From positions 5,952,001-6,016,000 of the forward strand of contig CM119378.1 of assembly GCA_051294905.1 (NCBI GenBank): 64,000 nt of DNA. The letters run 5' to 3'. This stretch comes from Botryllus schlosseri (taxonomy: Eukaryota). Under the pieces are notes generated by a model. That model was given only the letters and a program-made list of their open reading frames with translations, ran no database searches and was not told the origin of the DNA. Below are positions 56 to 19,590 of this stretch, one piece after another; the stretch's first letter is position 1, and each line of letters begins with the position of its first letter. Made by a program: the position numbers and the translations under genes.

Positions 56-3000
56 CGAATATGTGGCTTGAAGGCAAATGAAAATGCCCACCTTGGCTCC
101 TCCGAATTATACCCCACTCCTCCTTCAAATACAAAGTGTTTCGTGGCCAACTTCATCCATTTGATGACAAGTCCCGTGTCTATGCTTTCGGAACTAGCGG
201 ACACGTCCACCAAATACACCACTGTCGCTTCTGCACATAGATGCAGCGAACTGTTTACCGCATACGGTGTTGAGTCATTTTATGGAATAACTTACCGTCA
301 ATCTTTGGTAATTGCAACACGGGCTTCCATGTGGCATGAAATCCCTTCTTATGAAATGCGTCGTCACTGGTAAAACGTACCAACATCCATTGCTCTGTGC
401 TTATCACGGGAGGTACATCGCCAGATTCCGTCAATGGGCCGCTGCGATTATATTTAAAATAAAATCAAAGCTTTGGGCACGGAAGCCGGAATCATAGCAA
501 CCACGCGTTCAGTTGCATTCGGTTCGTAAGTGCATGTTGCAAGAATCTGGCCACTTGTAATAAATTCGAAAGTACCGTTTCCAGATGTGATCAAAGTAGT
601 CAACGCATCTACACAAGTAGAAGTAGAACTAACGGTTTACATTTATATGCAATTACAAGTAGAAGTAGCTATTTCAAAGTCATGTCAAATTATTTCATGA
701 GTAGAAATTGAAGGTATCAAAGATAGGCTACTTAAGTATCTAGTTTCAAAAATAGATTCACTCGGCGGATCGCATACTTTTCGCAGTTAATCGGTGGTGA
801 CCCTTTTGGAATAGCAGGGTTCATCTTCAAATAGGGGCTGAAATAAATTTAGTAACCGTGATATAGGGCTCGTTCGTCCTATTTTCCTGACATTTACGCT
901 CATAAACGTAATTCAACCTTATCCAAAAACTATACTTTGTAGTAGCGGACCGGGGACAAATGTAACAATCGACCTCACCTCAAGGAGGGTGGAATAATTT
1001 AAAAAAAACACGAAATATTGGACACTTGGGTAAATATTTTCTGGTCTGGAATAACTTGTTCAGAAGAATAATAGCTCAAGTGATTACAACGTAATATATG
1101 TAGCTGGAACAATGTTACCATAGTATACCGTGATGATAGGAAAACTAGGACTTACATCGCCGGGAGGTACCATTCTGGGATACTAATCGTGGTCGAGCGT
1201 GTCAGAAGCAATTTTAACACTCTGTTACTTTTGCCCCGTTACTATCTTTTGAATGCTGAATATCTTTGTTCATATGTTGGTATAACCATTCATCTACAGC
1301 AGATTAATCTTGCAACGCAGCCAGAAGTTCAATACCAGAACAAGTACTACCTTGCCATACCAATTCCAACATGATCATCTGTCGGAATGGCCATGAAGAA
1401 GTGGTGATCTGAAGCTTAAGGTTAGGTTATTTCCGTGAATCCACCACCCTTTCTCATGTTGATCGACTGGTGGAGTGTGGACGTTGAATGGTCACTTAAG
1501 AACTTTCCCGTGACTGAATCCTAATCCCCTGACTTTGAGCATCACCCACTTACCTTTTGTTATTTGGTGTGAACAATTCATTTTAATTTTGTACAGAACA
1601 GAAGAATGCCATTAGCTTTGACGCCGCACAATGTTCTGTACTCATTTTCCTACACTATCATCGACCCATTCAACCAAGATATTTTAGCCAGATCGGTTTC
1701 GCACCTTCGCAGGTGACCGAATGTCCAACCCATCATGCACGCTGAACAACAGCACCTTGGCAGGAGAGGTCAAATGTGTGTATGGAGAGGATGGAATAAA
1801 TGTGGTTCTTGTGCACTTTGAGCTCATTCAGCAGGCAAGAAGAATGATTCTGTATTCAGGCGCCAAAATGCGATGGGGCGTATAGCCTGGAAGTGTTCAA
1901 ACTTCTCTTAATGCAATAATACCATTTGTGCTCCCGTTTCCGTTGTTCATTTCGTTACGGTACAGACCGATTGTAACATTTGAACGGAGGTTTTCGCGAC
2001 ACAAAATTTCCTTGATGGATTGTTGATTGAGTTCCATTTTAGTTTTTACATCAACTTATATCGAGTTATTGGCTTCTTTATATGAAACTTTAGAAATAAA
2101 ATTTCCATGAGAAAAACACGTAAAGTTAGAAAATTCAAAACGTGTTACAATTGTCCCCGGTCTCCCCTAGACCTCAAAAAACTGTCAAGTAAAAGTAGGA
2201 GTTGTCTAAAAACAGGATTACTTGAGTAAGTAATGCAGGTGGGCAAAATGTAGTTGAGTACTCGGAAAATGTAGAAGTAGCCTACTTCGTTACTGACAAC
2301 CTCTGAGTCACTGACTATTTCGTTCAAATAATCTCCATGTATTTATAGTGCGGAGTGGGTCCACAAATTCTCTGGTCCTGCTTTTTAAAGCTCTGGTCCG
2401 AATCCGGTCCGACTCCTAGGTAGGGTTCTAAAATGACCGAGCTCCGGTCCGAAAAACTCCGATGATAATTAACTACTCACATGATGGTATTGAATATTGA
2501 TTGAAACAATTCAAATTAAATTAAAAACTCAAAGATCAAGTCTAAGCCTTATCTGAAGTAATTATGCAATATCCGATCCGGTTCCTGTCCATGCCCCGCT
2601 CTATAGTATGTACCTCACTACCTTTTCTGAACATACCTAATCTCTGCAATCTTTTCGTCTTCCTCTTGACTGTAGCCGTCATATATTTTTACCGAATCGA
2701 ACGCCTCTTCAGTCGTAAACTCGTCGAATCTAGATATTGTCGAAACCGTGTATTTCATTTGATATTCGAAGCTCAATCGCCAAGTAAGTTACTCGAGCGA
2801 TATGCGGAATCCTTTCCTGGCCGCCAGCCGCCATTCGCAGTCGACGTTCTCCATGTACATGTCATCGTAGTAGCCCGGCGACCATATAGCTTTGTCGATG
2901 TGATTTTTCGTATCCGGGCAAGAGGCTCGAAGCTCACCATCTTGTCAAAATTAATATCGTCATTAACTTGCGAACGAATTTAGCATCAGTCGAAATGGAT

Positions 3001-6000
3001 AATTTTAAACCGCAAGATGATGATAATATGCTGAGGAGAAGGTAACTTACGGGTGATATTATTGCTTTGAGCCGAGTCCAAGTTAGCGCTGGTCAGACCG
3101 GGACAGCTACTAGTTGTCTAATTGAAACAATGATAGCTAAATGCCGGTAATATAATTCCAATCTCATTTGTAAAATGTTTCCATGCTCTAATTTTAATTA
3201 TGATTCAATTTCTGGTTTTCCTGAAAATGCTCCAGGAGAACTGCGGTGCGAAACTGGCCTAACTTGGTGTACGGAGCTTTGCTATTCTCGTGCTTTTGAC
3301 AGTGAACTCTGATTTGATATGACCTAAGCTTCATTTTTGCTTTATTTCTTTGTACCCGGAATTGAATTCATCATCTAAGATTTTGTTCATCCAGTAATTC
3401 TAATTCAGTCATTCTAAGTTGGAAAAGTTGAATGTTTTGTAGTTGTCCAATGTCCATCTATGGCACAGGTTAAGGCAGTGTTGGGAACAAGTCACTACCT
3501 TCGAGTCACGAGTCATTGCACATTGTGACTCGAGTCAAGTCAAGTCAATCGACTTTCGAAGGTAACTCGAGTCGAGTCAAGTCACTTGATTTTTGGAGAT
3601 GACCCGAGTCAAGTCGAGTCAAGTCAAGTCAAGTCACGAGTCAAGTCACAATTCAAGTCAAGTTGCTTTTTCGTAGTATGAGGCATGGTTACGTCATTGC
3701 ATTTTGATAGCTGTCTGGAATACAGATTGAGTGGTCATTGATTTTGAATGGATGAACGAATATAGAGTTAAATATATGCCCAAGAAGGCGCTGTATCGCT
3801 TACATATACACAGAACTGCTTAACTACGTAAGTAATTGCATAACCTCGGTTTATATTTACCAGTCAAATAGGTAATAGAGAAATGAACTGAAAAGATGCA
3901 ATATATTACCCATTAACAAATTGATATGATACAATTCGAGCCTGCGCCAATGGTTGCTGACTATATAAACAAGAGGTTTGGGTAATGTAAGAACAGAGTA
4001 CAAAAATATACATTTTGCTATTACATTACTTAACCATACTAGTTTACGACAACGTAAGCTGTAAGCTTCGATCACTTCGTTTGCGGTGAATTTATTTGTG
4101 AGAGAACAATGGATGCTCAGTAAAACGCACGATCATTGAATCATTGTTCGCTCTCGCGGGTTACACCAGCGTTTCGCGAACAATCCGAACATAGGCAAAA
4201 TTCAGTGATATTCATCAACACCGAGTACTTGATGACTTGAAATTGACTCGTGAATTTTGCTCCTAGTTACGAGTCAATCCACATTTCTGATACGCCGAGT
4301 CAAGTCAAGTCAAGTCATTTTAGCAAAGTAACGCGAGTCAAGTCAAGTAACACGAAAAAGGTGACTCGAGTCTGACTCAAGTCAAGTCATGACTCGAGTC
4401 ATCCCAACACTGGGTTAAGGACATATCTGTCAATATAATTTAGCCTTTACTCTTTTTCCAATTACAGTGAAATGAGGCAGTAATACTTCCATTGGCACTG
4501 ACTGCAATATCCAGAGTATTAATTGCCATCAGGCAGGTCTTAGTTTGAACCAAAGTGCGATTACTCAGGCGCATGATTTTCCTAGTTGATGTCATTTCAT
4601 AGATATTTCTGAATACCGTCGCTCACTGACCTCCAAAGAATAACGTAGGAACGCTGATTAAATCTTTTATAAGTTGCAGAAAATCAGGTGATACCAGCTC
4701 TGAGAACCGCGATATCCGAAAACCATGCTCAGCCTTGCTGGACATTGCCTGTAAATCGAGATTCACCAGACCCTGCGTCACGGAGTAAGCCTACAATGTC
4801 ACCTGACCTTTGCGTACAGCTCTGTTAACTTTTGGTATTCGTCGTTCATCTTAACCCGCCATCGAGATAGATCTTCTTCTTCGTCGGCAAATGCGATATT
4901 TTCCTGAATGTCGGACTGAAACTTACGGAATATACCACGAAAATAGTCCACGCCTTCGTCATAGTCCTCTCCCACGATAACACCTTTGCTATACAGATAT
5001 AATAGAACACTGATACCTATACATAATTTCTCTATTCACATATACGTACGTATCGAACGCAATACCACGCATCTGCTGTGGGCCCCGTGACTGGTACCGC
5101 CCTCGCACTCCACTCTGACGGTATCGCGGTTGTCGATTCTCTTCGGGATCTGCTATAAATGTTATGACATACGCCCCGGCGTCTTTCAGTCCTCGAATTT
5201 CATCTACAGCGCCGTCCAGCAAACTGTAGCTCATAAAGGGCGTTTGAAAATTCAACACGAGCAAGATCAATGTCGGTTTTTTCCTTGCAAATCCACTGCT
5301 CAAATATCGGCCTGCAGATTCGAAAAGTCGTTTTCGTAACGCGAGACTTTTTTTACTGAAAAAACTGGTATATCGTCGCGTTTTCGGCCATATTTTGTCC
5401 ATGTTAAGGTTTATCAGATTGTTTCAAAGTTAATCATGTTCAAGATAAGGCCAACAGAAAATTAAAATTTTACATAAAGCTGATTTTCTAATTGCAGAAT
5501 GGACATACGCTACTATGATTCAACAACGACGATATTCTGTATTTAATTAAATAATTATTACATTGACATTCATTACCATACTGGTTCACGGTAAACTTCC
5601 TTGGTTATTGGACGTGACCGTTTGGTGATTATCGCCTGTTTTTAAAGATAGTTCCATCCCGCAATCATTACCTTTTATGGTCTGCAGACTTTGTTCCAGG
5701 TCAATTTTATGAGGGGAAAGATCTCCGTCATACCCCATTAGCAGTTCTTCTACTATGCTTTGGTTGTACATGGTAAAGCCCTCGCTGATTTTCGACAAAA
5801 GATTTTTAACAGTCATTTCTATGCAGCACGAATCAAAATCTAAGAAGTTCTGCGCTTTGTCTGTAAGTAGGTCAAGTCCTACTCTGGTTTCGTTCATCCA
5901 ACTGCCCAGTATATTCACTGCTTGCAGTCCTTGCATGGCGAACTTCTTGAAGTTTTCGAAGTCGTCATCCTGTACCGAAGTTGCAGGCGATTATTCATTG

Positions 6001-6200
6001 CTACGAAAGGCCAGCGATCAAATCATTACCGTAACCCCGGAGCGTTGTAACAGGAAAATGATGTCGGAATTGGTACTGATGTCGCTGCTGTGTTTACCCA
6101 CCGCAGCTCGAAAGTCGATGCTCTCTTGGGCGACCGCTGTAATCATTATTTCAAATATGCACATGATTACAATTATACAATAAGTAGAATGAAACGCCAT
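56..6200 (-). CDS. vWA-CUB-vWA secreted/membrane protein, downstream paralogue (3' part lies beyond window start)
   Basis: Phase-consistent GT-AG exons: 6030-6200, 5672-5969, 5050-5311 (donor could alternatively be ~5095), 4808-4988, 4631-4748, 2793-2940, 2637-2729, 296-441, 56-230. Translation: hydrophobic leader MAFHSTYCIIVIMCIFEIMITAVA; vWA-like DIIFLLQRSG..DDDFENFKKF..TRVGL..KPTLILLVLNFQ..LKDAGAYVITF; CUB SC..IWSPGYY..DCEWRL..EFDEFTTEEAFDSVKIYDG..ISTEQWMLVRFTSDDAFHKKGFHATW; second vWA start VVYLVDVSASS. Exon phases match the paralogue at 9868-18714, and three exon lengths are identical (118, 93, 146 nt). Confidence 0.85.
582..750. mobile_element. hAT MITE fragment (GTAGAAGTAG-rich family), one terminus
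   Basis: Begins CAGATGTGATCAAAGTAGTC, matching the reverse complement of the right end of the intact copy at 54538-54793. The other terminus of this family is at ~2175-2305 (CTTCGTTACTGACAACCTCTG). No shared TSD found. Confidence 0.55.
941..2169. mobile_element. TIR element, TA-flanked (Tc1/mariner/pogo-like non-autonomous), in an intron of the downstream vWA-CUB gene
   Basis: Inverted repeats ACCGGGGACAAATGTAACA (~949-967) and TGTTACAATTGTCCCCGGT (~2143-2161), 1 mismatch; TA at both outer ends. No intact transposase recognised inside. Confidence 0.55.
2175..2305. mobile_element. hAT MITE fragment (GTAGAAGTAG-rich family), other terminus
   Basis: Ends CTTCGTTACTGACAACCTCTG, the reverse complement of the left TIR region CAGAGGTGGTCAGTAACGAAG of 54538-54793. 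Confidence 0.55.
3105..3450. repeat. Dispersed AT-rich repeat family, copy 1 (inverted relative to 10422-10830)
   Basis: Internal segment GGTTTTCCTGAAAATGCTCCAGGAGAACTGCGGTGCGAAAC..GAACTCTGATTTGATATGA is the reverse complement of ~10545-10670. Confidence 0.5.
3476..4412. mobile_element. hAT (Buster/Charlie-type) MITE with GAGTCAAGTC subterminal arrays
   Basis: 11-bp TIR CAGTGTTGGGA / TCCCAACACTG; perfect 8-bp TSD GGTTAAGG (3468-3475 and 4413-4420); dense GAGTCAAGTC repeats near both ends. Confidence 0.9.
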
Positions 6201-6399
6201 GCTCACAACTTTCTTATGGACAACCTTTGATTGCTGGTACCAAGAAAGTTTGTTTTGTTTCTGATTGTGATGTCATAGACAAGCGTGTATTCGGATTGTG
6301 AACATTGGAATGGAATGCGAACGATGGGTATTAAAGAACGCTAAAACATAAAAATCCGTCGATGTTGTTTTTGTGATTGGTTATATTATGCCGTGTGCG

Positions 6400-6476
6400 T
6401 CAAATAATTTGGTGTGCCATGCAAAATCATCTCGCGTGCCACAAATGGCACGCGTGACGGGGTGGCTGACCCCTGC
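6400..6476 (-). mobile_element. hAT MITE terminal fragment
   Basis: Minus strand reads CAGGGGTCAGCCACCCCGTCACGCGTGCCATTTGTGGCACGCGAG, a CAGGGG-type hAT terminus with the palindrome CGCGTGCCA-CAAA-TGGCACGCG. Other end not found. Confidence 0.45.
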
Positions 6477-6479
6477 CAT

Positions 6480-6620
6480 ACGCGGATGAGATGGCAAGCA
6501 GGAGCCTAGATAGACCCCCAACACTCAGGTAGGAATTCTGTAGTCGACCTCGGTCGGACTCGAGCCCAAAACCCATTGCTGTTGCAGCTGTGGAATATCC
6601 CACTACGCTACCGCGCCACA
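6480..6620 (-). mobile_element. tRNA-derived SINE family 2, 5' part
   Basis: Minus strand GTGGCGCGGTAGCGTAGTGG (A box) ... GGGCTCGAGTCCGACCGAGGTCGAC (B box-like). Same head as 51285-51545; body continues into sequence shared with 36760-36800. Confidence 0.65.
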
Positions 6621-6727
6621 CATATTTTAATGTAATGGAGGTATGACCAATGTTCCCTCTAATTTTTCACGAGTCTGCGCAAACACGTCAACTTACTGCG
6701 CAGGCCCATGAACAACAGTGCGCAACC

Positions 6728-6972
6728 AGGCCCCCCTTATGGTGATAAACCGAACTTCACCCCCCAGACCTCCCTCGGCATCTACGTTTTTGGCCGCAAT
6801 TTATCATCTACATTGGGTGTCCCTTTAGTGGGTGTATATCCTAGACGCGCGAAGCGCGAAAATTTTATATAATTCATGATTGAATCGGTCAATATGACGG
6901 GAATTGCATATATATTGCTATTATTATTTATCCTCTCTCTGCTCACGTAATCAGATTTACCGGTAGAGCTGA
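6728..6972. repeat. Internal repeat family copy (inverted relative to 7770-8095 and 8170-8460)
   Basis: GGTGATAAACCGAACTTC..ATCTACATTGGGTGTCC..CTGCTCACGTAATCAGATTTACCGGTAGAGCTG is the reverse complement of segments at 7770-8045 and 8170-8460. Confidence 0.65.
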
Positions 6973-7010
6973 TCGAGTGAAGTGTGTTCGAAATGGTAGG
7001 ACCTCTAAAT

Positions 7011-8569
7011 CAGTGGTTCTTAACCTTGCCCCCAGCGCCCCCCAGGGGGCGCTGGCGATGTTGAAGGGGGGCGGAAACGCTCAGGGGGCGATATGGGGGG
7101 CGCTGGGCTCAGGGGGGCGGTATGGGGGGCGCTGGAGAAAAATGGCTTCGCAGTAGATGATGTGGTGATAGGACATATCTTAAATGAGTATTGGGAGCAA
7201 ATTCACACCGAAAACTTCGTTACATATAGCCTTCAAAATACATATAGGTTTAATTGTCCATGGGCGCCTAAATGACTGACACCGAATGTTCCTGTCTTGG
7301 CAATCTGAACCCCAGAAGACGAATTCCATCTGGCAGGGAAAAATTATATGTCAGTGAAGAAATACCAATCTGAAATCGTGTGCGTCTTTTAGTTTAGTAC
7401 GATTGGGCGACAGGGATATTCCTGTTGGGCGATATCCCCGTTGAGCGATTCTATATTTTTTGATATTGCAGACAGGGGGTCACGAAATAACATCATGCAA
7501 CGAGGTCATACCAACGGGTTCGCCCGCCCGAATATGTTTAATTATTGGTAACGGGCCCTACAGTTTCCAAGAAACCTCACAATGTTCGCTTCAAGTTTTG
7601 ATGAGTCTGCGCACACTCAACAACTCACTGCGCTGACCCTTGGACAACAGTGCGTAACGACTAAAAAAAGGTAATAACTCCGGATTTGTTGTGCGCAACG
7701 TAGATTTTCTGTGCGCAGACACCGTGTCAGCACTGCGCACGTGCGCAGCTTAGAGGGACCATTGCACCTAACTCAGCTCTACCGGTAAATGTGTTTACGT
7801 GAGCAGAGAGAGGATAAAAATTGATCTCAATTTACATGCAATTCCCGATGATATTGACCAATTCAATCATTAATTAGTGAAATTTTTCGCACTTCGCGCG
7901 ACTAGGCGAGAATAGCTCCCTCAGTAAATGGACACCCAATGTAGATACCTAATAGGCTATCAGCAAATAGCGGACAGCCTAATGGGGGTCTGGGAGCGAA
8001 GTCCCCCGGAAGTTTGGTTTATCACCCGATGGGGGCCCAGGACCAACGTTTTATGTTTGGGGAGGGGGGCTGACGAAGTGCTGTTACGGCCCTGGTAACG
8101 AATATTTGTACCTGCGGGAACGCCCGAATATGTTTAATTAATAATTACGTGCCCCTTATTTTCCTATACAACAGCTCACTCAGTGTTACTGGTAAATCTG
8201 ATTACGTGGGCTGAGAGGATAAAAAGTTTATAGCGACTTATAAATGTAATTACCATGCATTATGGAAAATATGCAATTACCATGCATTATAGCAAATTTT
8301 GGTACCTAGGGCGACCAGGCCACACAAACTTTGCTGACCACCAAAATCACGATATGGGGTTCGTGGGGGCGAAGCCCTCAGAAGTTCGGTTTATCACCCT
8401 ATGGGTGCGCAAGGCAATCGTTTTTAGGGGGGTTGACGAAGTGCTGTTACGGTCCTCCCTCTTACTCATTGTCTTTATTACATTCCTTACAATATGAAGT
8501 TGAGGGGGGCGCTGGAGCACAATAATTTTTGAAAGGGGGCGCTGGACGAAAAAAGGTTAAGAACCACTG
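7011..8569. mobile_element. hAT (Buster/Charlie-type) MITE nested in 6648-9060, itself containing insertions
   Basis: Perfect 17-bp TIR CAGTGGTTCTTAACCTT / AAGGTTAAGAACCACTG; perfect TSD CTCTAAAT (7003-7010; 8570-8577); GGGGGCGCTG subterminal repeats. Confidence 0.92.
7580..7764. mobile_element. Short CAATGTTCCCTCTAA-family MITE copy nested within 7011-8569
   Basis: CAATGTTCGCTTCAA ... GCTTAGAGGGACCATTG; internal sequence shared with 6648-6727, 8887-9060 and 19591-19791. TSD not recognisable. Confidence 0.65.
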
Positions 8570-9111
8570 CTCTAAATAATAATCAAACATCTTCAGGCGT
8601 CCGTTGGTATAATGACTTCGGTACATAGTTCGGTACTTCTAGCCCATTGTTATTTATAACTTTGTTAAACCATGTTATTTCGCCAGTCCTAGAAAAGATT
8701 GCGCTATTGAAATGAAATCAGTATCGCTCATGCGTAGGCCCTACGAGACCATACTAAAAAAAAATCTCGTTCGTGAGGCGCACGTGATTGCAGATTCTTA
8801 TTTCTTCATGGAGCGCGATATCTACCTTTGCGGGCAGCACTTGTACCTCGGCTTCAGACTTCAGCGATAGCACTATTTTCCCCTGGCTATGTTCCCTATA
8901 ATTTTTCTGCGCGCCCGCGCGGTCCCTTGGACAACAGTGCGCAACGACTGAAAAAAAATCATCACTGCGGATTTTTTGTGCGCAGCCTAGATTTTCTGTA
9001 CGCAGAGACCGTTTCAGCACTGCGCATTTTGCGCACGTGCGCAGCTTAGAGGGAACATTGGGTATGACTAGACCCACCAGGGGAACTGCACGAGTGCACG
9101 TATTCTTGGTT

Positions 9112-9405
9112 ACCTACAAGATAGCGTAATGGTGACGCCTCCGGCTTCTTGATCGGTAGGTTGTGGGCTCGATCCCAGGCGGGTCAGACCAAAGACCTGA
9201 TTTGTAACACTGGTATCTTCTATGACTTTCCTGCTTGGCGCTCAGCATTACCGGGATAACATGGAGGGGTGGTGCAAGGCTTAGAAAGCCTTACAAGGCT
9301 ATATCTGCACCTTCCTTGTCCAGCGGCATGTGTACTGTACATCATGCACTCATAGTATTATGCATATGCACAGATCGTGTGTATGTGTATCACTAGTCCG
9401 GTGTA
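9112..9405 (+). mobile_element. tRNA-derived SINE family 1, copy 1
   Basis: A box TAGCGTAATGG, B box GGCTCGATCCC, then GGGTCAGACCAAAGACCTGATT..CCTGCTTGGCGCTCAGCATT..GATAACATGGAGGG..CCTTCCTTGTCCAG. Near-identical layout at 37125-37396 (-) and 45130-45410 (+). Confidence 0.85.
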
Positions 9406-9469
9406 CAAGCCGCAAAAATACATAACGTCCTTTTCTTGGTGTTGGATGCTTTCTATGCTCTTCCTCGCA

Positions 9470-9635
9470 ATGACGACCGAGTAAACGGTGTCTTACAAAA
9501 AGCCTACAGCATAAGTGGGCCGTGCTACAAATAAGCCGATGAGGAATCAAAAAAAATGAATATCGACCTAGTGTAACTGACCAATGACCATTATTAGTCG
9601 AAGCACTATGAATACCCAAAACAACCAAGTATTGT
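9470..9635 (+). mobile_element. SINE family 2, 3' part
   Basis: GGTGTCTTACAAAAAGCC..AAGTGGGCCGTGCTA..ATGAATACCCAAAACAACCAA, shared with 36785-36935 and with the reverse complement of 51300-51400. Confidence 0.6.
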
Positions 9636-9867
9636 TGAAATTTACACATACATTTGCGATATTCACAGTAAACAAGCTATATATTTTACCAGGAATGGGG
9701 AATTTACTGTTGCTACTTGCTGTTGACGTTACTAAAGTTAAATCAGGCAGTTAGGCACGGGACTTTTGTTCCATTTTCCCTTGCTCCTTCGAAGCAATAA
9801 ATACCCGCGTACAGAAAAAATTATATTGCATATATTGCGCATTTAATGCTCATGGAGCACATGGAAC

Positions 9868-12800
9868 TCATGGAGCAACGAAATGTTTCGGTAAGACTGC
9901 ACGCCTTGTGAAAAAACTGTTGACTGCTTCCGGATATCTAGTCTTCGGTCGATTTGGTACTTTTTCCTCCGGAGGTTTGAATTTCAAAATTTTAATCCTT
10001 TCCGATCTTGGTAACTTCATAAGCTGCAATACGATGGTCATCTTTCAGGCGTTGACCGTTTCGAGCATTTGCCGGATACGAACTTACCTCTATCATTTCT
10101 CGTTTCTTTCGCTCCCTCACCATGGACACTGTGGAGATGCTTGCAATTAAAGGCGGTAGCGTTGACGATGTGTATAGGATCAGCGCGACGAGGCCAATTG
10201 ATTCCATAACACCTGTTACATGGAATCAATTGCGTGTCTCTGCTTAAAATGCTATTATGACTGGATGGCTGTACCTATCACCGCAAGAAGGATGGCCAGT
10301 CCGAGATAGTCGAACCTGTCAACGCTCTGAAAATGTGGCGTAGGTGGCGGCAGTGTGGGATAGGTTCCTGGAAGTGTATAGGGTTACCAGAGAAGTCAGA
10401 CATTTGGCATTTCGAACATTGAGAACAGAGTTGGACAACCATAGATAATATTTTGCTTTTAAAATTAGATTATAACTAAAACTACAGCTACACAGTTTCT
10501 TTCTTTAAATTAGATCATAATTAGGATTATTTAATTCGGAAATTGAATGAAGCTCAGTTCATATCAAACCCGAGTTCATGGTCAGAAGCGCGAGAATGAC
10601 AAATGTTTGCACAGCAAGCTTGTCTCGTTTCGCACTATACAGCTCTCCTGTAGCATTTTCTCGAAAACCACACGTTAGATTACAATTAATATTAGAGAAT
10701 CGAAATAATTCACAAATTAATTAGATTAGAATTAGAATTAGACCAAAGAAACATTTCACAAATCAGATTAGTATTAGATTACCGGTATTTACTCTAATTA
10801 TAGACGAACAGAATTATCTAGTTGTCCAACGCCACTACGAGGTGACGATGGGTTGGGGGTTATGTTACGATCAACCAGACCTGCAATCCGAGACTGCACT
10901 ATATCCATCCATGCAACCACATTACACAGTGAATTCTGAAGCTTCTGTGCGAAATGCTAAATGTCCGAAATATGTGTCATTCGAGTTTCATTATAGATTA
11001 CTAACCTACGGATAAATACGCAACTCCCGTTGTAACGCTTCGGCAAGCAGTTACTCCTATTGCTGAGCAATCTAAAAGTAGCGTAATTGGTGGTGTTATA
11101 GCTTGCGACCCGACGGCTGAAATTTAATTAAAGTCGACTTAATCGAGAGCTTCTGTCGCACTAATTCCGAAAATACAAATTAGAATATTGTCAGGGAAAT
11201 GGAACCACCTCAGGACAGCCGCCAAAATTTGAAAAGCGGCATTGTTCCGACCAATCGCTTAACGAAATTGGCTATTGATATGTTCATTGTGTTGCGGCGG
11301 TGCCATTGTTGGAACAAAACCGATTTAAAGACTTTTACGGCTGTTTTGACGTGGTTCCATTTCCCTGACAAGATTTTAATTTGTATTTTCGGAATCAGTG
11401 AGACAGTAGCTGTCGATTAAGACCAGCTTCATTAAATTTCGCCAGCTATGGCACCACCAATTACGCTACTTTTAGATTGCTCAGCAATAAGTGTAACTGC
11501 TTGCCGGAGCGTAATGACGGGAGTTGCGTATCTATCCGTAGGTCAGTAATCTATAGTTTCATTCAGTGGTAATCTTTAGCAGCGCAGCTCATTCATTCGC
11601 ATTTATCTGTCGTACATACCTGTATAAGGGTATTGTCGTTGCGTAGTAGATGACAGTGAATTTGGATCTGTGGTTGTTGAAATTGTAGTTGATTTTACTG
11701 GTATCGTGGTGGTAGTTGTGGATTTTGATGGCGTTGTAGTTGTTTCTACTACTGTGATTCTCCACGCCTTCTGCTCATTGCAAAATAGGATACTTCATTC
11801 TCACTACGTGCTTCCGAATCTTGCGGGTATCATGTTGACTTACTTTCAGGTCCTGCATGATTTGAGCTGCAGAAGCGTGGCGTTGGTATGCGAGTCCGCA
11901 ATCGCTAACTAAATCATCCCTAACTTGTAAATTGACCATGCCAAACCCAATGAATATCGGCACAATATTCCAGTCGCACAGTAACTTGATGAAAGGCTTT
12001 GGATCGTCGACGGAATGCCAGTCCGATAACACGAACACTGCTCGTTTCGGAAACTCCGCCGTCTCGTCAACGACGGAGGATCGAAGATGACTGGAGTCTC
12101 CCATTACACGTCTGTATATATTTGTAAACACATGTTACGTCCGGATTACATTGGATTGAATTTTTCATCCCGCGATGAACTCACAAAAACTGCTTTAATC
12201 TTGTGAAATCTAGCGCCTTTCCCAGGAAAGTCGGCTCCTCCGTCTTCTCTAAATCTGCCGCCGTATCGCGCAGATCCTCCGCTGTTGAAGGTACTTCGAT
12301 ACTTTGGACGACTTCGGCTTCTTCCGCGAATTTCACGATACCAATGTGCGAGGATGCTTTTTCTTTTGCCTTTCTCAATTGACGTTTGTAACGAAACTTT
12401 TTGTCCGCGCTTTTTGTTGATCTGAATTCAACTGTTCTTCACTTAACATATTCAATTAATAACAAGTATATCGACATACTTCGTTTTGCCAACTCTACTC
12501 AAAATTGAATATTCACTTTCTGTCTCTACTCCTTTCTTGGAACTCGTATCATCCAGAAGAAAAAACTTCGATATTTCATAGATCCACGTCGAGATATCCT
12601 CCATGATTATGCTGCCGGATACGTCTACCAGAAATATTACGTGACCATCTATAAAGAGAATGTGTGTTTTGATGTAAGCATTTGCCGTAGATTCTAATGG
12701 CGGGTTTCAACAGTAGTGGGCATACCCCCAACTCACGCACCTACCTTCGATCTGATCGTAATGTGTCAGAGGAGTCCAGGTCGCTAAAAATCCACGCTCA

Positions 12801-15800
12801 TTGTTTCCACCGTCAGTTTCAAGAATTAACATCACGCTTTCCTTCGTGCTGTTTACTGTGAAGGGCTTTTCTTCAGATGCCAAATTCCCGCTGTGAATAT
12901 TTCATAATAATTCAATTCGTTATATGCCTCAGTGTGGCTGTTGAAAACTATTTGAATCATTACTATTTGGGCATGCGTTCTTAACCAGGATCCGGATTCG
13001 ATGTAATAGTATTTACGGTGGTTGGTTTTATTATTAATAATTTAATTAAATAATTCGCCACCGTGAACACTGTTTTTGATGAAATCCAAAATTCTCTAGT
13101 CCATTCACTTTTCTTCTACGGTTTGGAATGAAACCAAATTTGATATGCATCGTTTTTTGAGACAATCTAACAAGTTCATGGGGTAGGGTATTTCTAATTC
13201 TAATAACACAACACGTTCACATTGCCAAATTTATTCCACTCGAAGCCTTTCGACTGACTCTCAACGTATTGTTTGCTGCAATATTGAAGTTCTGTACTTA
13301 AAATAAATTTAAAACTTCATCCTCTAATAAGAATGCTTCTTTCCCGGTTGGAATTGAGCTAGTTTTGATGTGCAGAGTTTATTTTAGCCAAGCTCACGAT
13401 TTTATCAGGTAGCCAGTTGAATAAAAAAGTTATTTTTGAACATCCGTAATGTACAGTACAAGCATATGCGTCACGTTACCCAGACTTATCCATGCATCCT
13501 CAAAGCAGAGGAATTGGTAGGTATTAATCATTTTGCTGCGGCCGCTGCTTGGTGCTATCAATTACAAAATCGGTGTCTACGGCAGTGCCGAGTTGAAACT
13601 AGATCAAGTTGCCCACCTGACGTATCATCGTGAAAGTAAAATAATAAATTCACCTGTATACTCCTAGAACGGGAGTTTTCTCTTTTGTTTCCCCGTCGTA
13701 AATTGTCACTCGATCAAATACGCTTTCCGTTCGGAACATATCAAACCTTTAGACCAAAAGAGCAGAACAACAATTTTTGAAGTCGCCGCAAGATGACGCT
13801 AGGTGATCGCATAGTTTGTTTTGTCTCGCGGTTAATTCTGCCATGTGCAACTTGGGACGCGGGTGTCTTTCGGCTGCGCTCATTGACAAAGTCAATGGGC
13901 TGACAGTGGGGTTGAAATGACTCGAGTCAGATTCGAGTCGCGATTTTTTGGTGACTCGACTTGACTCGAGTCATTTTCTTAAAAATGAAAAATGACTCGA
14001 CTCGACTCTAGTCAATTTGTGCATTGACTCGACTTTTACTCGAGTCATTTCGCATGACTCGGACCAAGTCATATGACTTGAGACTGGGTCTACCAAGACA
14101 GGCGTTTCATTGTAATTTCGAAGAATAGTAAAGGTATCACGCTATTAATATTTCGTCTATCAGTACTGATACTTGAAAATGCTACCAGAAACTGTTAAAA
14201 GGGAGACAAATTAGTATATTATAAATGCGAAGCATTCGATATCACCCAGCCGAGTCGTGAAAAGTGGGTTTGCTATGACATTAAATCGGAACTGAACAGT
14301 AAACACAATGACTTGGACTCGGACTCGAGTCAAAACACTATGAATCGGACTCGACACTCGACTCGGTGACTTGGACTCGGACTTGACTCGGTGATGAATT
14401 GAAAATGACTCGAATTGGCTCGAGTCAAAACTATAAAAGTGAAATTGACTTGTGACTCGGAACCTTGTGACTTGGTTACAACCCTGATTGACAGCTGACA
14501 CTTTTAATCAGATTTTTTAAACCTGTGCGCCACGAGGGTGTTTTAAGGTGGGCCAATGAGCTATTTGGAAATTCATGAAGTTAGTAAAAAGATTGGTTTT
14601 GTTCGTATCTTCATTTCAAAAACTATAATTCATATTTTCAAGTTTGTGTATCAATTGACACAAATCCAAATGATTAGTAGCATGGAAGAAAAAACTTCCC
14701 CCTCAGTAGTATTGATTTCAATAACTGTGTGCGTTATATTATGACGTCATCGAGATATTTCCAGTAGTTAGAGACAAGGAATAGTTTCGAAACGTAAACT
14801 GAACCACGACCATGAGAAGTTTAAGGACCACTGCTTCAGATCCACTTGAGATTCAAAACTGCCAATTATCTCATTCATCCGGTTAATTTCGGGCATATAA
14901 TGGTGGCGCGCGCGTAATGTCTTGGATATTTTTGAATTTTATACCAACCTCAAGGACACAAACTGGCCTCGAGGAACTGTGATCAGCCACGAGCAGTCCT
15001 TCGCGTTTGGATATTTATGCGTGGTGTAATAGTCAGGAGTCCAGATTAGTCTGTGAATAAGATTACGCGTATCTGTACACGACGTTTCGACTTCTCCTTC
15101 TGTAAAATATATCACACCCACAATGATCTCAAAGTCACGGCATCGTCTGGTTAGGATGATATACCGTACCTCCAAACCAAGTCATTGGACTCGAAATAAT
15201 CCCAGTCAGAGTATTCAAGACGTTGCTACTAAGCAACTGTGAATAATTGTCCAACTTGAATCCGTGCTCAGGAATGCTCGACATTTCCTGAGATGCGAAA
15301 CAAAAAAAATCACATTATAGTTACAGTTGTTGGCGCTGGTATTATCCACCTTCGCGAACTGCAAAACTAAAGTTTTGCTCAGCTTCCCATCATCAATCCT
15401 CGGCTCGTCAAACTTGGCGATTCCCTCGAATTTCGGCTGGTTGTCTTTTTTGTCTTTTTCTATCAATTCCTCCAGATGTAAGTTGTAGTCGTTTGGTTTC
15501 TTATGGATTTCGCTGCAATTACATCGACGGTATATGATTATGGTTTCCCGGTATTTGCATCGACCAAATATAGGTATATCTCCTGGGTGGTCTAAGCTAA
15601 ACGAATAATTTATAGTTATGGGATACGGGAATAAACATACCAGCGACCGCTATAGAGATCGTGAAATGAGTGTTCCTGATAATCATCTTATGCATTGACG
15701 GCTGGAGCTATAAGACTTATCAAGAATCGATTATCATCACCGCCTTTGGTTTTATGAGGAACACAGTATATAGCCACAACGTCAAGATAGCGGCATCTTG

Positions 15801-18714
15801 TTCAGTCACATTATCGAGTTTCATCAAACCCTTTTAAGGAAAATATATCAGGATTAATTTCAAGCGATTTTGTAGATAAAGTGTATAGATATCGCTTTCA
15901 TCCTTGTTTCCTGATATCCTCTGACCCCCGCATTTTATCGGTGGTACTTAATGATCCGCCCATGTGCCTATATAATCCGATTGGTAATTATCATTATCAT
16001 GCCATAGTGTTTTAACAACTATCTATATCCCCGAATGTTTAGCTCATACATGCTATGGTCGTAAGATTGTGTATTTGTATCCAAATCGACTTAATTGTAT
16101 TGCGATTCCATTCGGTCCTAGGCATTTCTCAGTATAGCTGTCGGTTCCTAACGGACCATCGCCACCACTCGCCAGTCATGATCACAAATGAAGTCGGCGT
16201 AATTCAAATGGAACACAGCCTATGACTATATCATATTTCCTAATCGCTGTTATTTAGCCCCTTCAATGGTTATCACGAAGATCTTTCTGAGCCTATTGTG
16301 TTACCTAATTTGCGATACATGTAGGGTTTTAGGGTTGTAGCGTGACAGTCGCGGAAAGAGAGAGAGACACTTAATATATCAACGCAAAAATTCAAACATG
16401 ATGGATGGATGATCATCGCGACACATCGCATCAACGTATTCAAAATACGAAGCTATACTGATACGATACACGAATTACAGGATTAAGCATATATCGAGAA
16501 TTAACCTATAAGGAAGATTGATGTAATGTAGCATTTTGGAATCCTCGCGACATAACATCTAAGCAACAAAATCTTTCACAGGGTCTGGTGAATCATGGCC
16601 AGTTTTAGTAAGCCATGGGTCAATCAGTACCCACGACATCAGCATGGTTTAAATGTGATATTGAAAATATGAAACATCCCATTGAACTGAATAATATTTA
16701 CTTTATTTCTTTCTCATATTGATCGTATTCCTCTCTGGAGTAGATTGAGTTGTCGCCAATGTCACTTTCGACGCCGCCGCCCGCAAGATTAAAATCTTTG
16801 TCGATATGAGGCTGTCTGAAAATTGAATATTTCCGCTGCCGTATTCGTAAGGTCGCATTTTACCTACTTCACCTATTCTCGAAAGGGTCTACAATGACCG
16901 TCACGACGTGAAGTCCCAATTTTTGTAACTTGGCGACTTCCAACATCGCCGCGTTTAGAACGTTAAAGCTCATCCGGCGCGTTTGAAAATTCAACAGCAG
17001 GTACAACACAGAAGGCTTGTAAGTCGTCACGTGTTCGTCGGATAGTTGTTGCTCTGGCACAAAAACAGGTTTGCTGAAAGTCGGTATTTTTTAACACTTA
17101 CCCTGTTAGTAGGGCTGGTAAGAATCGAGTACCTATAAGCGATTTCATTTCGAATGAAGGATATGAGGCTTCGAGCCAAGTCGAGTATTCTAAGATGTGG
17201 AATGTTCAAATATGTACCTTTTTATGCTACATCGCGCCAAAGATAATTTGTAATTTTTTCAACCATGCATATACACATTCAAATGTATAGTTAAAAATTC
17301 CAAGCAATTTTCCGCGGTCCGGATTTAGCACGCGGGCCGTAAAATACCCAGGTGTGTCCTCCGCCAATTTGCAAACCTTTGAAGATCCCCTAATTGTCAG
17401 TGAGTCACAAAAACCTACCGCAATACAGATCTAACTACACATTTATTACATTACCGGTACTTACATTGTGCGCCCGGAAACACCGGTCAAGAACAACTGA
17501 TCTGCTTAGTTTTATTTAGTAGGTTGCGGATTTTTAAAGATCGGGTAGTAGTTCTAGTTCTAGTTCTAGTTCTAGTTGCGGTTTTGAAACAGTCAGTAGT
17601 TCTAGTTTTAGTAGCGGATTTTCAAAAGTTGGTAGTTTTAGTTATAGTTGCGAGTTTTCACAGTTGATTAGTTCTAGTTTTAGTAGCGGATTTTTCAAAG
17701 TTGGTACTTCTCGTTCTAGTTGCGAGTTTTAAAAATTGAACAGTTCTAGTTCTAGTAGCGGACTTTTAAAAGTTGGTAGTTCTATAGTTATAGTTGCGAG
17801 TTTAAAAAAATGAATAGTTCTAGTTCTCAGTAGCGGATTTTTAAAAGTTGGCAGTTCTAGTTCTAGTTGCGAGTTTTGAAAAATGAGTAGTTCTAGTTCT
17901 AGTTCTAGTTGCGCTTTTCGAAGATCCAGTAGTTTTGTACAGTACAAGACTGTTCGAGACTCAGTGGGAAATGGCCTTATCGAAAAAACTCTTAGCGGCA
18001 AAGAGCTAATAATTTCAGTACTAGAAAGCATCATCTCTCACAAAACTCGACACACATCATTTAAATTAATACTCGCTTCAGATTCGAGTACTCGTATCAT
18101 TGTGCCCAGAACTACTCGTATGGAGAACTACTTCACCTCGTATGGAGTAAAGCCCGTACTCGACATCGACGGAGTCAGGCGACAGGTCTGAATGGTTTTG
18201 TATGTCATAAAATCTTTTGGTGTCTTCGTCGATAATGACCATGTCGTTGGTGATCATTCCCTCCAGCTGGGATAACCCATCTTGGCAGCAATCTTTGAAT
18301 GTGATCATATGCTGTGTCAGCGCTGAGAAGGCAGTCACGGCGAAACGCGTTCTGTCTCTTGTAGACGCGATCGCTTTGGCAGAACTGGCACATTCCAGTA
18401 TAAATTCTTTTACCATGTCAAAATCGGAGTCCTTTGAAATTAAGGAGGATGATTTTCATTACAACATAGACTAGAAAGGGATTATATTCGCCCGCGACAC
18501 TCACGGACAATCCGGCCTTTTGAATCGCGACAATGATATCCGGATAATCACTAAAGTCATCTGCAAGCTTCGATTCGGTCATCGGGATCGAATCCGCATG
18601 TGTTTTTCGCGCTCTGCCGTGACTCCTCGAAAGTGGTTTCATTGATCGGGTGTCATCGAAGGTTGAAAATAATGCGATAAGAGCGAATGTATGAAATAGA
18701 AATCCGTTCGTCAT
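9868..18714 (-). CDS. Type I membrane protein: signal peptide - degenerate vWA - CUB - vWA (MIDAS) - Thr-rich stalk - TM - cytoplasmic tail (about 851 aa, 15 exons)
   Basis: Exons 18505-18714, 18137-18431, 16873-17053, 15350-15512, 15170-15287, 14949-15099, 13654-13746, 12745-12890, 12480-12648, 12185-12421, 11844-12111, 11620-11770, 10275-10367, 10088-10212, 9868-10023 are all GT-AG and phase-consistent (sum 2556 nt). Motifs: MTNGFLFHTFALIALFS leader; DIIVAIQKAG..DFDMVKEFI..RTRFAVTAFS; CUB C..IWTPDYY..YPNAKDCSWLITVP..RFDMFRTESVFDRVTIYDG..STKESVMLILETDGGNNERGFLATW; vWA VIFLVDVSGS..HIGIVKF..TFLGKAL..AVFVLSDW..IVPIFIGFG; ETTTTPSKSTTTTTIP stalk; TM YLGLAILLAVIGVMESIGLVALILY; basic RERKKR. Confidence 0.9.
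10422..10830. mobile_element. TIR-bounded repeat, copy 2 of the family at 3105-3450
   Basis: Ends GTTGGACAACCATAGATAAT / ATTATCTAGTTGTCCAAC form an imperfect inverted repeat; internal similarity to 3200-3330 in reverse orientation. Confidence 0.55.
10992..11555. mobile_element. Foldback (palindromic) MITE, TA-flanked
   Basis: About 250-bp inverted arms: TATAGATTACTAACCTACGGATAAATACGCAACTCCCG..GTAGCGTAATTGGTGGT..CAGGGAAATGGAACCAC versus its reverse complement ending AGTAATCTATA; short central spacer. Confidence 0.88.
13907..14486. mobile_element. hAT MITE (GACTCGAGTC-array family)
   Basis: Degenerate TIR TGGGGTTGAAA / TTACAACCCTG; imperfect TSD GCTGACAG / ATTGACAG; same internal sequence as 57984-58414. 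Confidence 0.75.
14508..14833. mobile_element. Degenerate Charlie-type hAT MITE
   Basis: Right end GAAGTTTAAGGACCACTG resembles the CAGTGGT TIR class; left end CAGATTTTTTAAACCTGTGCGCC is degenerate; no TSD. Confidence 0.4.
17506..17940. repeat. Tandem array of ~36-bp monomers (two alternating variants) rich in AGTTCT
   Basis: Alternating AGTTCTAGTTTTAGTAGCGGATTTTCAAAAGTTGGT and AGTTTTAGTTATAGTTGCGAGTTTTCACAGTTGATT-like units, about 11 monomers, in intron 2 of the upstream vWA-CUB gene. Confidence 0.85.
17990..18114 (-). mobile_element. Fragment of the hAT MITE family at 60915-61433
   Basis: Minus strand TAGTTCTGGGCACAATGATACGAGTACTCGAATCTGAAGCGAGTATTAATTT matches 60915 TAGGGCTGGCCACAATGATTCGAGTACTCGAATCTGAATCGACTGTTAATTT. 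Confidence 0.7.
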
Positions 18715-19590
18715 CGTAACCGCTCTGTATTAGATGCAGATATATAGAATAAAGATGCGCCAAAATAATCTTCACCATGTGCTTGATGCTGCCTAGCAAC
18801 GTCATTGTGACGTAACAAGTATTTAAGGAGCAACGTGAAGTCTTCTTCTGAGCTGTGTGTGCGCGATGAAAAATGATTCATACATGTGGTTGTTCATGTT
18901 TGGAAACAATCGCATGACTAGAGTGAATTAGGCTATCATAATCATGGCCTAAATTGCAATTGATTACATACCACAAAGCATAATTCATTCTACTGATGTG
19001 CAATTGGTGAAATATAACGTAGGCTGAGATAAAGTGATAGATTATAGTAATTATGTGTATGGTCTCACAGTACAGTAATGCACGTACTGCGCTCACTACT
19101 GTTCCACTGACAAACGAAACGTAGGTACAATAAAACTATTACGAAGTATGGTGCTGACGCTGTACGTTTCATTATCATAGCAAGTCTTGCGTTGGAATGT
19201 TTGTAACCGTCATATTGTGATGAAATGAGATGATAATTCATGAAATGAACCGACAAATCTCGTGTATTGTTATCCAACGCCCTTCAACTCCGATTGCTGT
19301 GAATTTGATCACGATATAGTATTGACAGCAACGATCAAACACTTTGAATAGATAGTGGTTTTGACGGCTCGATAATTTCAATGTGCAGTTCTTACCTAAC
19401 ATGTATTTCATTGCCGTATAGTACGGTATATTTGTTTGTATTATCATGGTTCCATTATTGTGTTCAATCACACCAGCACCACACCTTCATTGTCCCGCAC
19501 GACCGTATTTGATTTCAGGCTTCTCTTAGATACACGTCTTGTGAGGTTTAATTGGCGTAGATAGAACTATACCAACAGTATCCTGTCCAC

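Follow-up and report, generated by a model that had tools for sequence, protein, structure and literature searches.

A head-to-tail pair of receptor-like genes with a vWA–CUB–vWA membrane architecture in the tunicate Botryllus schlosseri

Among living animals, none are more closely related to vertebrates than the tunicates, in which the vertebrate-type adhesion repertoire has been largely replaced or reshuffled. Here we describe two head-to-tail genes, A and B, on the minus strand of a 64,000-nucleotide (nt) stretch of the Botryllus schlosseri genome (assembly GCA_051294905.1, contig CM119378.1, positions 5,952,001–6,016,000; hereafter the window, numbered from its first letter). Both encode predicted membrane proteins in which a signal peptide is followed by a first von Willebrand factor A domain (vWA1) without a metal site, a linker of roughly 130 amino acids, a single CUB domain, a second vWA domain (vWA2) with a metal-ion-dependent adhesion site (MIDAS), a Thr/Pro stalk, a transmembrane helix and a conserved cytoplasmic tail (79 amino acids in gene A). 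RNA contigs show gene A to be transcribed, with splicing that agrees with its model. It is the arrangement of the domains that is new: the modules themselves are known, and a member of the family from Styela clava already stands in RefSeq as an uncharacterised prediction.

The window has a GC content of around 40% and contains no runs of N. Translation of its minus-strand stop-to-stop frames from 18729 to 55 gave pieces resembling a signal peptide, vWA strands and CUB strands. Gene A runs from 18714, where its ATG lies, to 9868 and comprises 16 exons (Table 1) with 2667 nt plus a stop codon, encoding 889 amino acids; every exon is open and every intron is of the GT–AG type. An earlier note made from the letters alone had described two minus-strand genes lying head to tail with 18714 as their upper bound, and both the layout and the bound are borne out. 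We placed the contigs of three older RNA runs (X1, X4 and X7, from three studies) and the raw reads of one 2026 RNA run on window positions 11600–17599 (6 kb). All predicted junctions from exon 3 to exon 13 are present in the contigs of X1, X4 and X7, with CT..AC ends on the plus strand that correspond to GT..AG on the minus strand, so that, for exons 3 to 13, RNA bears out the predicted joining, which the earlier note had named as a possible point of failure.

The most extensive transcript is an X1 contig of 2743 nt, in which exons 13 to 3 lie at record positions that match the summed lengths of the model exons (1205 + 146 + 93 + 151 + 118 + 163 + 114 = 1990, with exon 3 beginning at record position 1991). 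Its last 570 nt equal exon 2 (295), exon 1 (210) and a further 65 nt. At the other end, exons 14 and 15 and 161 nt of exon 16, as far as the stop codon, account for the first 379 nt, and the spliced contig covers the full length of the gene A coding sequence. Junctions 1–2, 2–3, 14–15 and 15–16 agree with this contig in length only and were not viewed directly. Exons 15 and 16 were placed from homology and splice consensus, and the start of exon 14 was set at 10367 because a loose end of an X4 contig at 11619 matches window positions 10337–10366. One X4 contig of 1185 nt (window 16868–17471) has exons 7 to 4 correctly joined but still includes intron 2, and 5 extra nt stand at the junction of exons 3 and 4; incomplete or aberrant processing of the transcript is the probable cause.

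Gene B starts at window position 6200 and runs off the left end of the window, finishing about 14.6 kb outside it. Translated comparison inside the window separates two diverged copies of one exon series, gene A at 18.7–9.9 kb and gene B at 6.2–0 kb. Judged from these alignments, the likeness of the two is far above chance, with exon-level E values of 1e-5 to 1e-12 in the translated comparison inside the window, tblastn E values of 1e-9 to 1e-18 for single exons and 33–38% identity over locally joined parts (blastp, E 1e-28 to 1e-38). Exons 6, 8 and 9, of 118, 93 and 146 nt, are equal in length and phase in the two genes, and their measured coordinates (Table 1) confirm the common phases and exon lengths that the earlier note had pointed out. 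That note had taken only one copy to be complete, which proved wrong. Looking left of the window, as it had suggested, we fetched 20 kb and found the remainder of gene B there, so that this gene, too, is complete. Counted leftward from window base 1, its vWA2 exons lie at -367..-549 and -610..-880, and an intron of about 12 kb separates them from the stalk, transmembrane and tail exons at about -12762..-12885, at -12947..-13045, at about -13100 and at -14428..-14646 (12.7–14.6 kb left of window base 1). All homologous exons of gene B are open and keep their phases, and the gene ends in a tail containing SRYPEMSGSFFERGSFLP, which is related to the gene A motif RYPEAVNSFFTRRAVLP. The locus consists of two intact genes that arose by tandem duplication.

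Of the database relatives that we found, the closest to gene A and the sole full-length one is a RefSeq prediction from S. clava (XP_039254437, 916 amino acids, ‘uncharacterized protein LOC120331426’; hereafter P0001), which runs collinear with gene A over its whole length, signal peptide to final residue. We used it as the proxy for domain searches and handled the spliced models of A and B in local scripts (translation, hydropathy, identity and classes of nucleotide polymorphism). The domain calls rest on the S. clava protein because exon-by-exon Pfam scans were mostly below threshold, the gene A exons alone giving weak VWA matches. On P0001, Pfam places a CUB domain at residues 381–481 (57.1 bits, cut-off 21.4), a VWA domain at residues 573–703 (41.4 bits, cut-off 23.8) and positions 1–17 of VWA_2 on residues 497–513; a scan of the same protein at E ≤ 0.1 gave nothing beyond CUB, VWA and VWA_2. 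Each protein begins with a cleavable-looking signal peptide. The order proposed in the earlier note, from signal peptide through vWA, CUB, vWA and Thr stalk to transmembrane helix and tail, agrees with this map.

The first domain (gene A residues ~56–228) is recognizable by fold. Pfam has no match to it on the window exons, on P0001 or on a further sequence, P0003, and a profile built from alignment A1 found nothing relevant among PDB sequences. The only alignment folded was A3, a trimmed alignment of the N-terminal domain from S. clava, a Ciona fragment, metagenome and Logan fragments and the window exons; two MAFFT alignments (A2 and A4) in which short exon fragments were set against a long reference placed those fragments wrongly and were discarded, and a single-sequence AlphaFold model of the full S. 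clava protein (predicted local distance difference test (pLDDT) 34.9) was not used. The AlphaFold model from A3 (pLDDT 66.6, predicted template-modelling score 0.63) shows alternating strands and helices, and all 50 of the 50 best matches listed by Foldseek against the PDB are vWA domains (template-modelling (TM) score 0.45–0.63, probability 1.00), with factor B on top and MIC2, PTMP1, CMG2, collagen VI and VWF A1 among the others. The model of the S. clava protein in the ESM Atlas reaches TM scores of 0.66–0.70 to vWA clusters, its feature-based neighbours are all VWA, and UniProt labels the Ciona fragment F6SXX0 ‘VWFA domain-containing’. Because the AlphaFold and Foldseek results, the ESM Atlas and the UniProt label agree, we assign the first domain to the vWA fold. 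The earlier note's call of a vWA domain therefore stands as far as the fold is concerned; neither a Pfam sequence match nor a metal site accompanies it.

Two positions mark the loss of that site. The motif in place of DxSxS reads QKAGLS in gene A, QRSGVT in gene B, QRPGIT in S. clava and QRAGVT in Ciona, and after β4 NF replaces TDG in all members, exchanging Asp for Asn. By these residues, vWA1 has lost the MIDAS metal site in every member of the family. In a local hhalign comparison of vWA1 with vWA2 only β1–α1 aligned (E 0.034), with β1 of vWA1 in register with the DTSGS of vWA2. An adjacent Cys pair (CC) that follows β3 of vWA1 is invariant across the family.

Beyond vWA1, the linker is charged and variable, and its final 39 residues, encoded by exon 6, are conserved in all copies. 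The CUB domain aligns best with CUB5–8 of cubilin (E 5e-21), with a Glu/Asp/Asp set in register with CUB6 and CUB8 of PDB 3kq4. The Glu, Asp and Asp of cubilin CUBs, along with a Tyr, we take to be Ca2+ ligands. The corresponding segments are FRTE, FDRV and ETDG in gene A and FTTE, FDSV and TSDD in gene B, and by these conserved residues the domain is predicted to belong to the Ca2+-binding subtype. It has the first disulfide only (Cys at gene A residues 368 and 396). In vWA2 (gene A residues ~487–716), the MIDAS segments read DVSGS, EPTFLG and VLSDWHS in gene A, DVSASS, DETHLA and LVSDGHS in gene B and DTSGS, EPTYLG and IFSDWHS in S. clava. A basic, probably disordered insert between α1 and β2 of this domain carries a furin-like site in gene A (RYKR, exon 11) and in P0001 (RKKR, residues 555–566); the insert of gene B is much shorter and has no such site. 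The stalk that follows is 69 amino acids long with 55% Ser, Thr and Pro combined and is presumably O-glycosylated. A single strong hydropathy peak at residues 786–810, encoded at 10367–10088, forms the predicted transmembrane helix of gene A; it is followed by RERKKRE and by the tail, which bears the motif RYP-x4-SFF-x-R-x3-LP.

Between gene A and S. clava, identity is 53% in vWA1, 56% in CUB, 49% in vWA2 and 56% in the tail; overall the folded domains and the tail are 44–56% identical, compared with 19% in the spacer before vWA1 and 20% in the vWA2 insert, and between the two genera the tail is as conserved as CUB. No hypervariable region is evident in this comparison. Within the species, the window differs from the contigs of the three RNA runs at 30 sites, counted as the best-supported subset of differences among the three studies, and 28 of these fall in the gene A coding sequence. 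Synonymous changes outnumber non-synonymous ones 22 to 6, which points to purifying selection on gene A.

Relatives are few. Queried with gene A exon 2, a set of 1.84 billion cluster-representative proteins returned ten at E ≤ 0.001, eight of which belong to the family: the S. clava protein, one fragment from Ciona intestinalis and six pieces of exon size on Logan, ENA or JGI contigs. The remaining two are beta-propeller-like repeat proteins and probably spurious. Word-index protein searches with the full-length S. clava protein, its C-terminal half and an N-domain profile yielded S. clava itself or short fragments only, among them one further fragment (P0012) that is a near copy of gene B exon 2. 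Two metagenome contigs that we fetched carry the same exon series as genes A and B. On L003, an ENA metagenome contig of 455 kb, positions 1054–19451 hold two copies in head-to-tail order, both on the same strand (at 1054–4818 the 3′ half of one and at 9020–19451 the 5′ two-thirds of the next), so the tandem arrangement is not peculiar to the B. schlosseri genome. The pre-CUB element of exon 6 is kept in gene B, P0001, L003 and L004.

In the 495.5-Mb assembly of this genome, matches outside CUB are confined to genes A and B. The S. clava protein also has CUB matches in stop-free frames of 750–900 amino acids at G000:C10:15993323-16022217 and G000:C6:7189956-7190249, a sign that other parts of the genome may hold multi-CUB genes with few introns. 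Among ESM Atlas clusters of at least 50 members, none joins VWA and CUB in this manner, and in the literature we found no paper mentioning the locus, the accessions or the architecture. With S. clava and Ciona intestinalis as its only named members, the family looks lineage-specific and, so far, restricted to tunicates. This is in keeping with the earlier note, which knew of no named family with this domain order and proposed a lineage-specific one; family scans, protein searches and the literature gave none. Its further suggestion of an undescribed system goes too far: the receptor family is uncharacterised, yet its modules are known, and a RefSeq prediction exists for the S. clava protein.

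What might such proteins do? By analogy with the roles of MIDAS-bearing vWA domains in integrins and ANTXR and of Ca2+-binding CUB domains in cubilin and MASPs, we propose a tunicate-restricted family of type I membrane glycoproteins acting as cation-dependent adhesion or ligand-capture receptors, a reading to which we give about an even chance of being right. The mucin-like stalk would hold the receptor off the membrane for divalent-cation-dependent adhesion or capture of a ligand. On a ligand in the matrix or at the cell surface, the MIDAS of vWA2 would coordinate an acidic side chain, as in integrin I domains and ANTXR/CMG2, the Ca2+ site of CUB would clamp a basic side chain, as in the CUBs of cubilin and MASP, and the metal-free vWA1 could offer a protein–protein docking surface. 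Occupancy might then be relayed to cytoplasmic partners through the tail motif. Several observations weigh against this proposal. The complete MIDAS of vWA2 is a prediction read from motif positions, and vWA2 had no match among PDB sequences. For the predicted signal peptide and topology, the basis is inspection, hydropathy and comparison with S. clava. The furin-like site may point to processing or shedding of the ectodomain. In X10, a bulk RNA-seq run of which ~6% was sampled, no reads fell on gene A exons, so expression of the gene may be restricted or low. A bolder form of the proposal, in which a tunicate-specific receptor with two metal sites (MIDAS vWA and Ca2+ CUB, capped by the metal-free vWA) couples contact with matrix or tunic to an intracellular pathway through the tail motif, seems to us unlikely. 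If it were true, the dual-metal-site receptor would be an adhesion-signalling invention of tunicates with a specific part to play in the biology of the tunic, the vasculature or budding.

Other explanations account for parts of the evidence. The dibasic RYKR and RKKR in the disordered vWA2 insert of gene A and S. clava would suit a secreted precursor of matrix or tunic, cleaved at that site or near the membrane so that a vWA–CUB(–vWA) fragment enters the extracellular matrix. Matrilins, AMACO, collagen VI and mussel PTMP1 are proteins built into matrices; AMACO, cochlin and the matrilins are the closest structural neighbours of the whole ectodomain, and vWA1 has PTMP1 among its best fold matches. 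The furin-like site, however, lies inside a folded domain and is missing from gene B, and a tail as conserved as the ectodomain modules fits a signalling or trafficked receptor rather than a disposable anchor; we therefore count a matrix precursor as a minor possibility. Fold matches also prompt the idea of an innate-immune receptor with complement-like logic, in which a factor-B-like vWA and a MASP/C1r-like CUB bind opsonised or collagen-like ligands on haemocytes, since vWA1 finds its best Foldseek matches in factor B vWA domains and the CUBs of MASP-1/-3 and C1s are among the CUB sequence matches. These matches reflect general folds, however, with VWF A1, collagen VI, MIC2 and CMG2 scoring equally, and Pfam found no CCP, serine-protease, TEP or lectin modules on P0001, which makes an immune role of this kind improbable.

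The earlier note had listed gamete recognition and allorecognition, beside innate immunity and adhesion, as possible roles; on this view the receptor would serve allorecognition or self-sterility, with a variable ectodomain discriminating individuals. In favour of such a role, one may cite the tandem and lineage-specific nature of this pair of surface proteins, found in the genome of a colonial or styelid ascidian, the use of vWA and CUB as recognition modules and the strong divergence of the paralogues. It is disfavoured because the polymorphism in the three studies is mostly silent, because the S. clava relative is so similar over the folded domains and tail and because this genome has two copies only; the family also occurs in Ciona and in the solitary Styela, and gene A lacks the extreme coding polymorphism of botryllid allorecognition genes of the FuHC/BHF/fester type. 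We rate such a role very unlikely. That there is no real feature at all, the locus being a pair of pseudogenes or a mis-joined gene model, might be read from the weak exon-wise Pfam scores and from the X4 contig with its retained intron and extra nucleotides. The open exons of gene A, the X1 contig that spans the length of the coding sequence, the repetition of the joints in three studies, the collinear S. clava model and the open, phase-conserved homologous exons of gene B speak against it. For gene A, the RNA joints all but exclude an artefact or pseudogene, and for the locus as a whole we consider this explanation extremely unlikely. The cation-dependent adhesion or ligand-capture receptor remains our preferred reading.

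With two kinds of predicted cation-dependent binding module, combined in an order found nowhere outside this family, this conserved, expressed receptor is a concrete candidate for tunicate-specific adhesion between cell and matrix or cell and tunic. Its vWA1 is a clean example of a vWA fold that is kept after the metal site is lost. At present, the gain is one of annotation: two gene models worked out to the nucleotide, one of them with RNA support, and a domain map for a RefSeq protein named ‘uncharacterized’.

Table 1. Exons of genes A and B and a repeat element within gene A (window coordinates; a joint is an exon junction seen in RNA contigs)
Feature	Coordinates	Strand	Content	Evidence
A exon 1	18505..18714	-	ATG, signal peptide, pre-domain spacer, vWA1 β1 DIIVAIQKAGLS without DxSxS	Open frame, GT donor after 18505; aligns with P0001 residues 57–75
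A exon 2	18137..18431	-	vWA1 α1-β2-β3, family-invariant CC pair	55.8% identity to P0001 residues 78–172, E 2.6e-32
A exon 3	16873..17053	-	vWA1 β4-α-β5, KPSVLYLLLNFQ...VVTVIVDPFENR	54% identity to P0001; X1 contig piece 16873–17055, its two surplus bases being the final two of exon 2
A exon 4	16702..16815	-	Start of variable charged linker	Joint 15512/16702 in X1, X4, X7 (114-nt side); cumulative lengths in X1 contig agree
A exon 5	15350..15512	-	Linker	Joints in X1, X4, X7
A exon 6	15170..15287	-	118 nt, conserved pre-CUB element PEHGFKL...ISSPMTWFG	Joints in X1, X4, X7
A exon 7	14949..15099	-	CUB N-terminal third, sole CUB disulfide pair	Pfam CUB/CUB_2 E 1.8e-4 to 6e-3; RNA joints
A exon 8	13654..13746	-	93 nt, CUB middle: Glu and first Asp of predicted Ca2+ site	RNA joints; orthologue CUB aligned to cubilin
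A exon 9	12745..12890	-	146 nt, CUB C-terminal third, second Asp of predicted Ca2+ site	Pfam CUB positions 73–109; RNA joints
A exon 10	12480..12648	-	vWA2 β1 with predicted MIDAS DVSGS, α1, start of basic insert	Joints in X4, X7; VWA_2 positions 1–17 in orthologue
A exon 11	12185..12421	-	vWA2 insert (RYKR, furin-like), β2-β3, predicted MIDAS Thr (EPTFLGKAL)	Pfam VWA/VWA_2; RNA joints
A exon 12	11844..12111	-	vWA2 β4 (VFVLSDWHS, predicted MIDAS Asp) to domain end	56.6% identity to P0001 residues 655–730; RNA joints
A exon 13	11620..11770	-	Thr/Ser/Pro-rich stalk	X1 contig piece 11619–11770
A exon 14	10275..10367	-	Stalk end and first half of transmembrane helix	X4 loose end; AG before 10367, frame restored
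A exon 15	10088..10212	-	Second half of transmembrane helix, basic stop-transfer RERKKRE	Homology to P0001 residues 804–858; strong donor AGAG/GTAAGT
A exon 16	9868..10023	-	Cytoplasmic tail with conserved motif RYPEAVNSFFTRRAVLP, stop codon	51% identity to P0001 tail
B exon 1	6030..6200	-	ATG at 6200, signal peptide, vWA1 β1 DIIFLLQRSGVT	Open frame, GT donor; aligns to P0001
B exon 2	5672..5969	-	vWA1	tblastn against A exon 2 E 3.8e-8; phases as in A
B exon 3	5115..5311, extends below 5115	-	vWA1 C-terminal half	47% identity to A exon 3; acceptor 5311 in the phase of A
B exon 6	4631..4748	-	118 nt, pre-CUB element	42% identity to A exon 6, equal phases and length
B exon 7	2793..2940	-	CUB N-terminal third	Pfam CUB 23.5 bits (cut-off 21.4)
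B exon 8	2637..2729	-	93 nt, CUB middle	
B exon 9	296..441	-	146 nt, CUB C-terminal third	Pfam CUB positions 78–110
B exon 10	56..230	-	vWA2 β1 with predicted MIDAS DVSASS	Candidate donors 113, 92 or 56
Foldback (inverted-repeat) element	10992..11555	.	Intron 13 of gene A, non-coding	

The introns of the pair hold repeats. In the foldback element of intron 13, the outer arms (117 nt) are 91% and the inner arms (133 nt) 82% complementary, and spliced contigs skip it. When translated, its arms imitate short open frames, one of them glycine/alanine-rich and transmembrane-like; the frames resembling a transmembrane helix and tail at 11213–11542 were rejected as coding sequence, being arms of this spliced-out inverted repeat. 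A related foldback copy lies in the long intron of gene B at -9586..-9765. Intron 7 of gene A contains, at 13800–14600, a dispersed repeat rich in GACTCGAGTC/GACTCGACTCG motifs, with a summed contig depth of 7,000–28,000 in the three contig runs as against ~20 for gene A and with many different sequences joined at 14486–14488. It resembles a transcribed repeat of very high abundance; that the place might hold a spliced-leader or small-RNA gene was considered and rejected in favour of the GACTCGAGTC-rich dispersed repeat, which has no Rfam match, and an Rfam scan of 9500–19500 found nothing. The 3.7-kb spacer between the gene A stop codon and the gene B ATG (6300–9800) is richer in GC (44–46%) than its surroundings and has many overlapping open frames on both strands, typical of transposon remains. 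A CUB-like open frame on the minus strand at 19241–19486, 0.5 kb upstream of the gene A ATG, was also set aside, with a tblastn E value of 0.14 and no Pfam support; it is probably due to chance.

The likeness of the family to complement factor B and C2 is one of vWA fold, with no CCP or trypsin match in the Pfam scan of P0001. With the CUBs of cubilin, MASP and C1s the CUB of genes A and B shares the conserved Glu/Asp/Asp positions of the Ca2+ ligands; it differs in being single rather than part of an array, in missing the second disulfide and in a loop from the Glu to the first Asp that is four residues shorter. Matrilins, AMACO (VWA2) and cochlin likewise have two vWA domains with a small module between or before them and are the nearest neighbours of the whole ectodomain in the ESM Atlas, at TM scores of only 0.26–0.41. 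In contrast to the B. schlosseri proteins, however, they are secreted, use EGF or LCCL spacers instead of CUB and have neither transmembrane helix nor tail, and matrilins end in a C-terminal coiled coil; Pfam gave no EGF match on P0001, and gene A has both a transmembrane helix and a tail.

Among membrane proteins, ANTXR1/TEM8 and ANTXR2/CMG2 are also of type I, with a MIDAS vWA that binds matrix ligands, a single transmembrane helix and a conserved tail. They have one vWA followed by an Ig-like domain, and no CUB or mucin stalk; Pfam found no Anth_Ig or Ant_C match on the S. clava protein, and no relationship in sequence was seen apart from the vWA fold. The apicomplexan MIC2/TRAP proteins combine an N-terminal vWA (A/I) domain with binding modules, a single transmembrane helix and a short conserved tail coupled to cytoplasmic machinery, and the MIC2 vWA is among the best fold matches of vWA1. 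They belong to an unrelated lineage, have TSR repeats as a spacer where our proteins have CUB, and carry a MIDAS in their vWA, unlike vWA1. Closest of all is S. clava LOC120331426, from another genus, whose Thr/Pro stalk and vWA2 insert are both longer, and which shares with gene A both the tail motif and the entire order of domains from signal peptide to tail.

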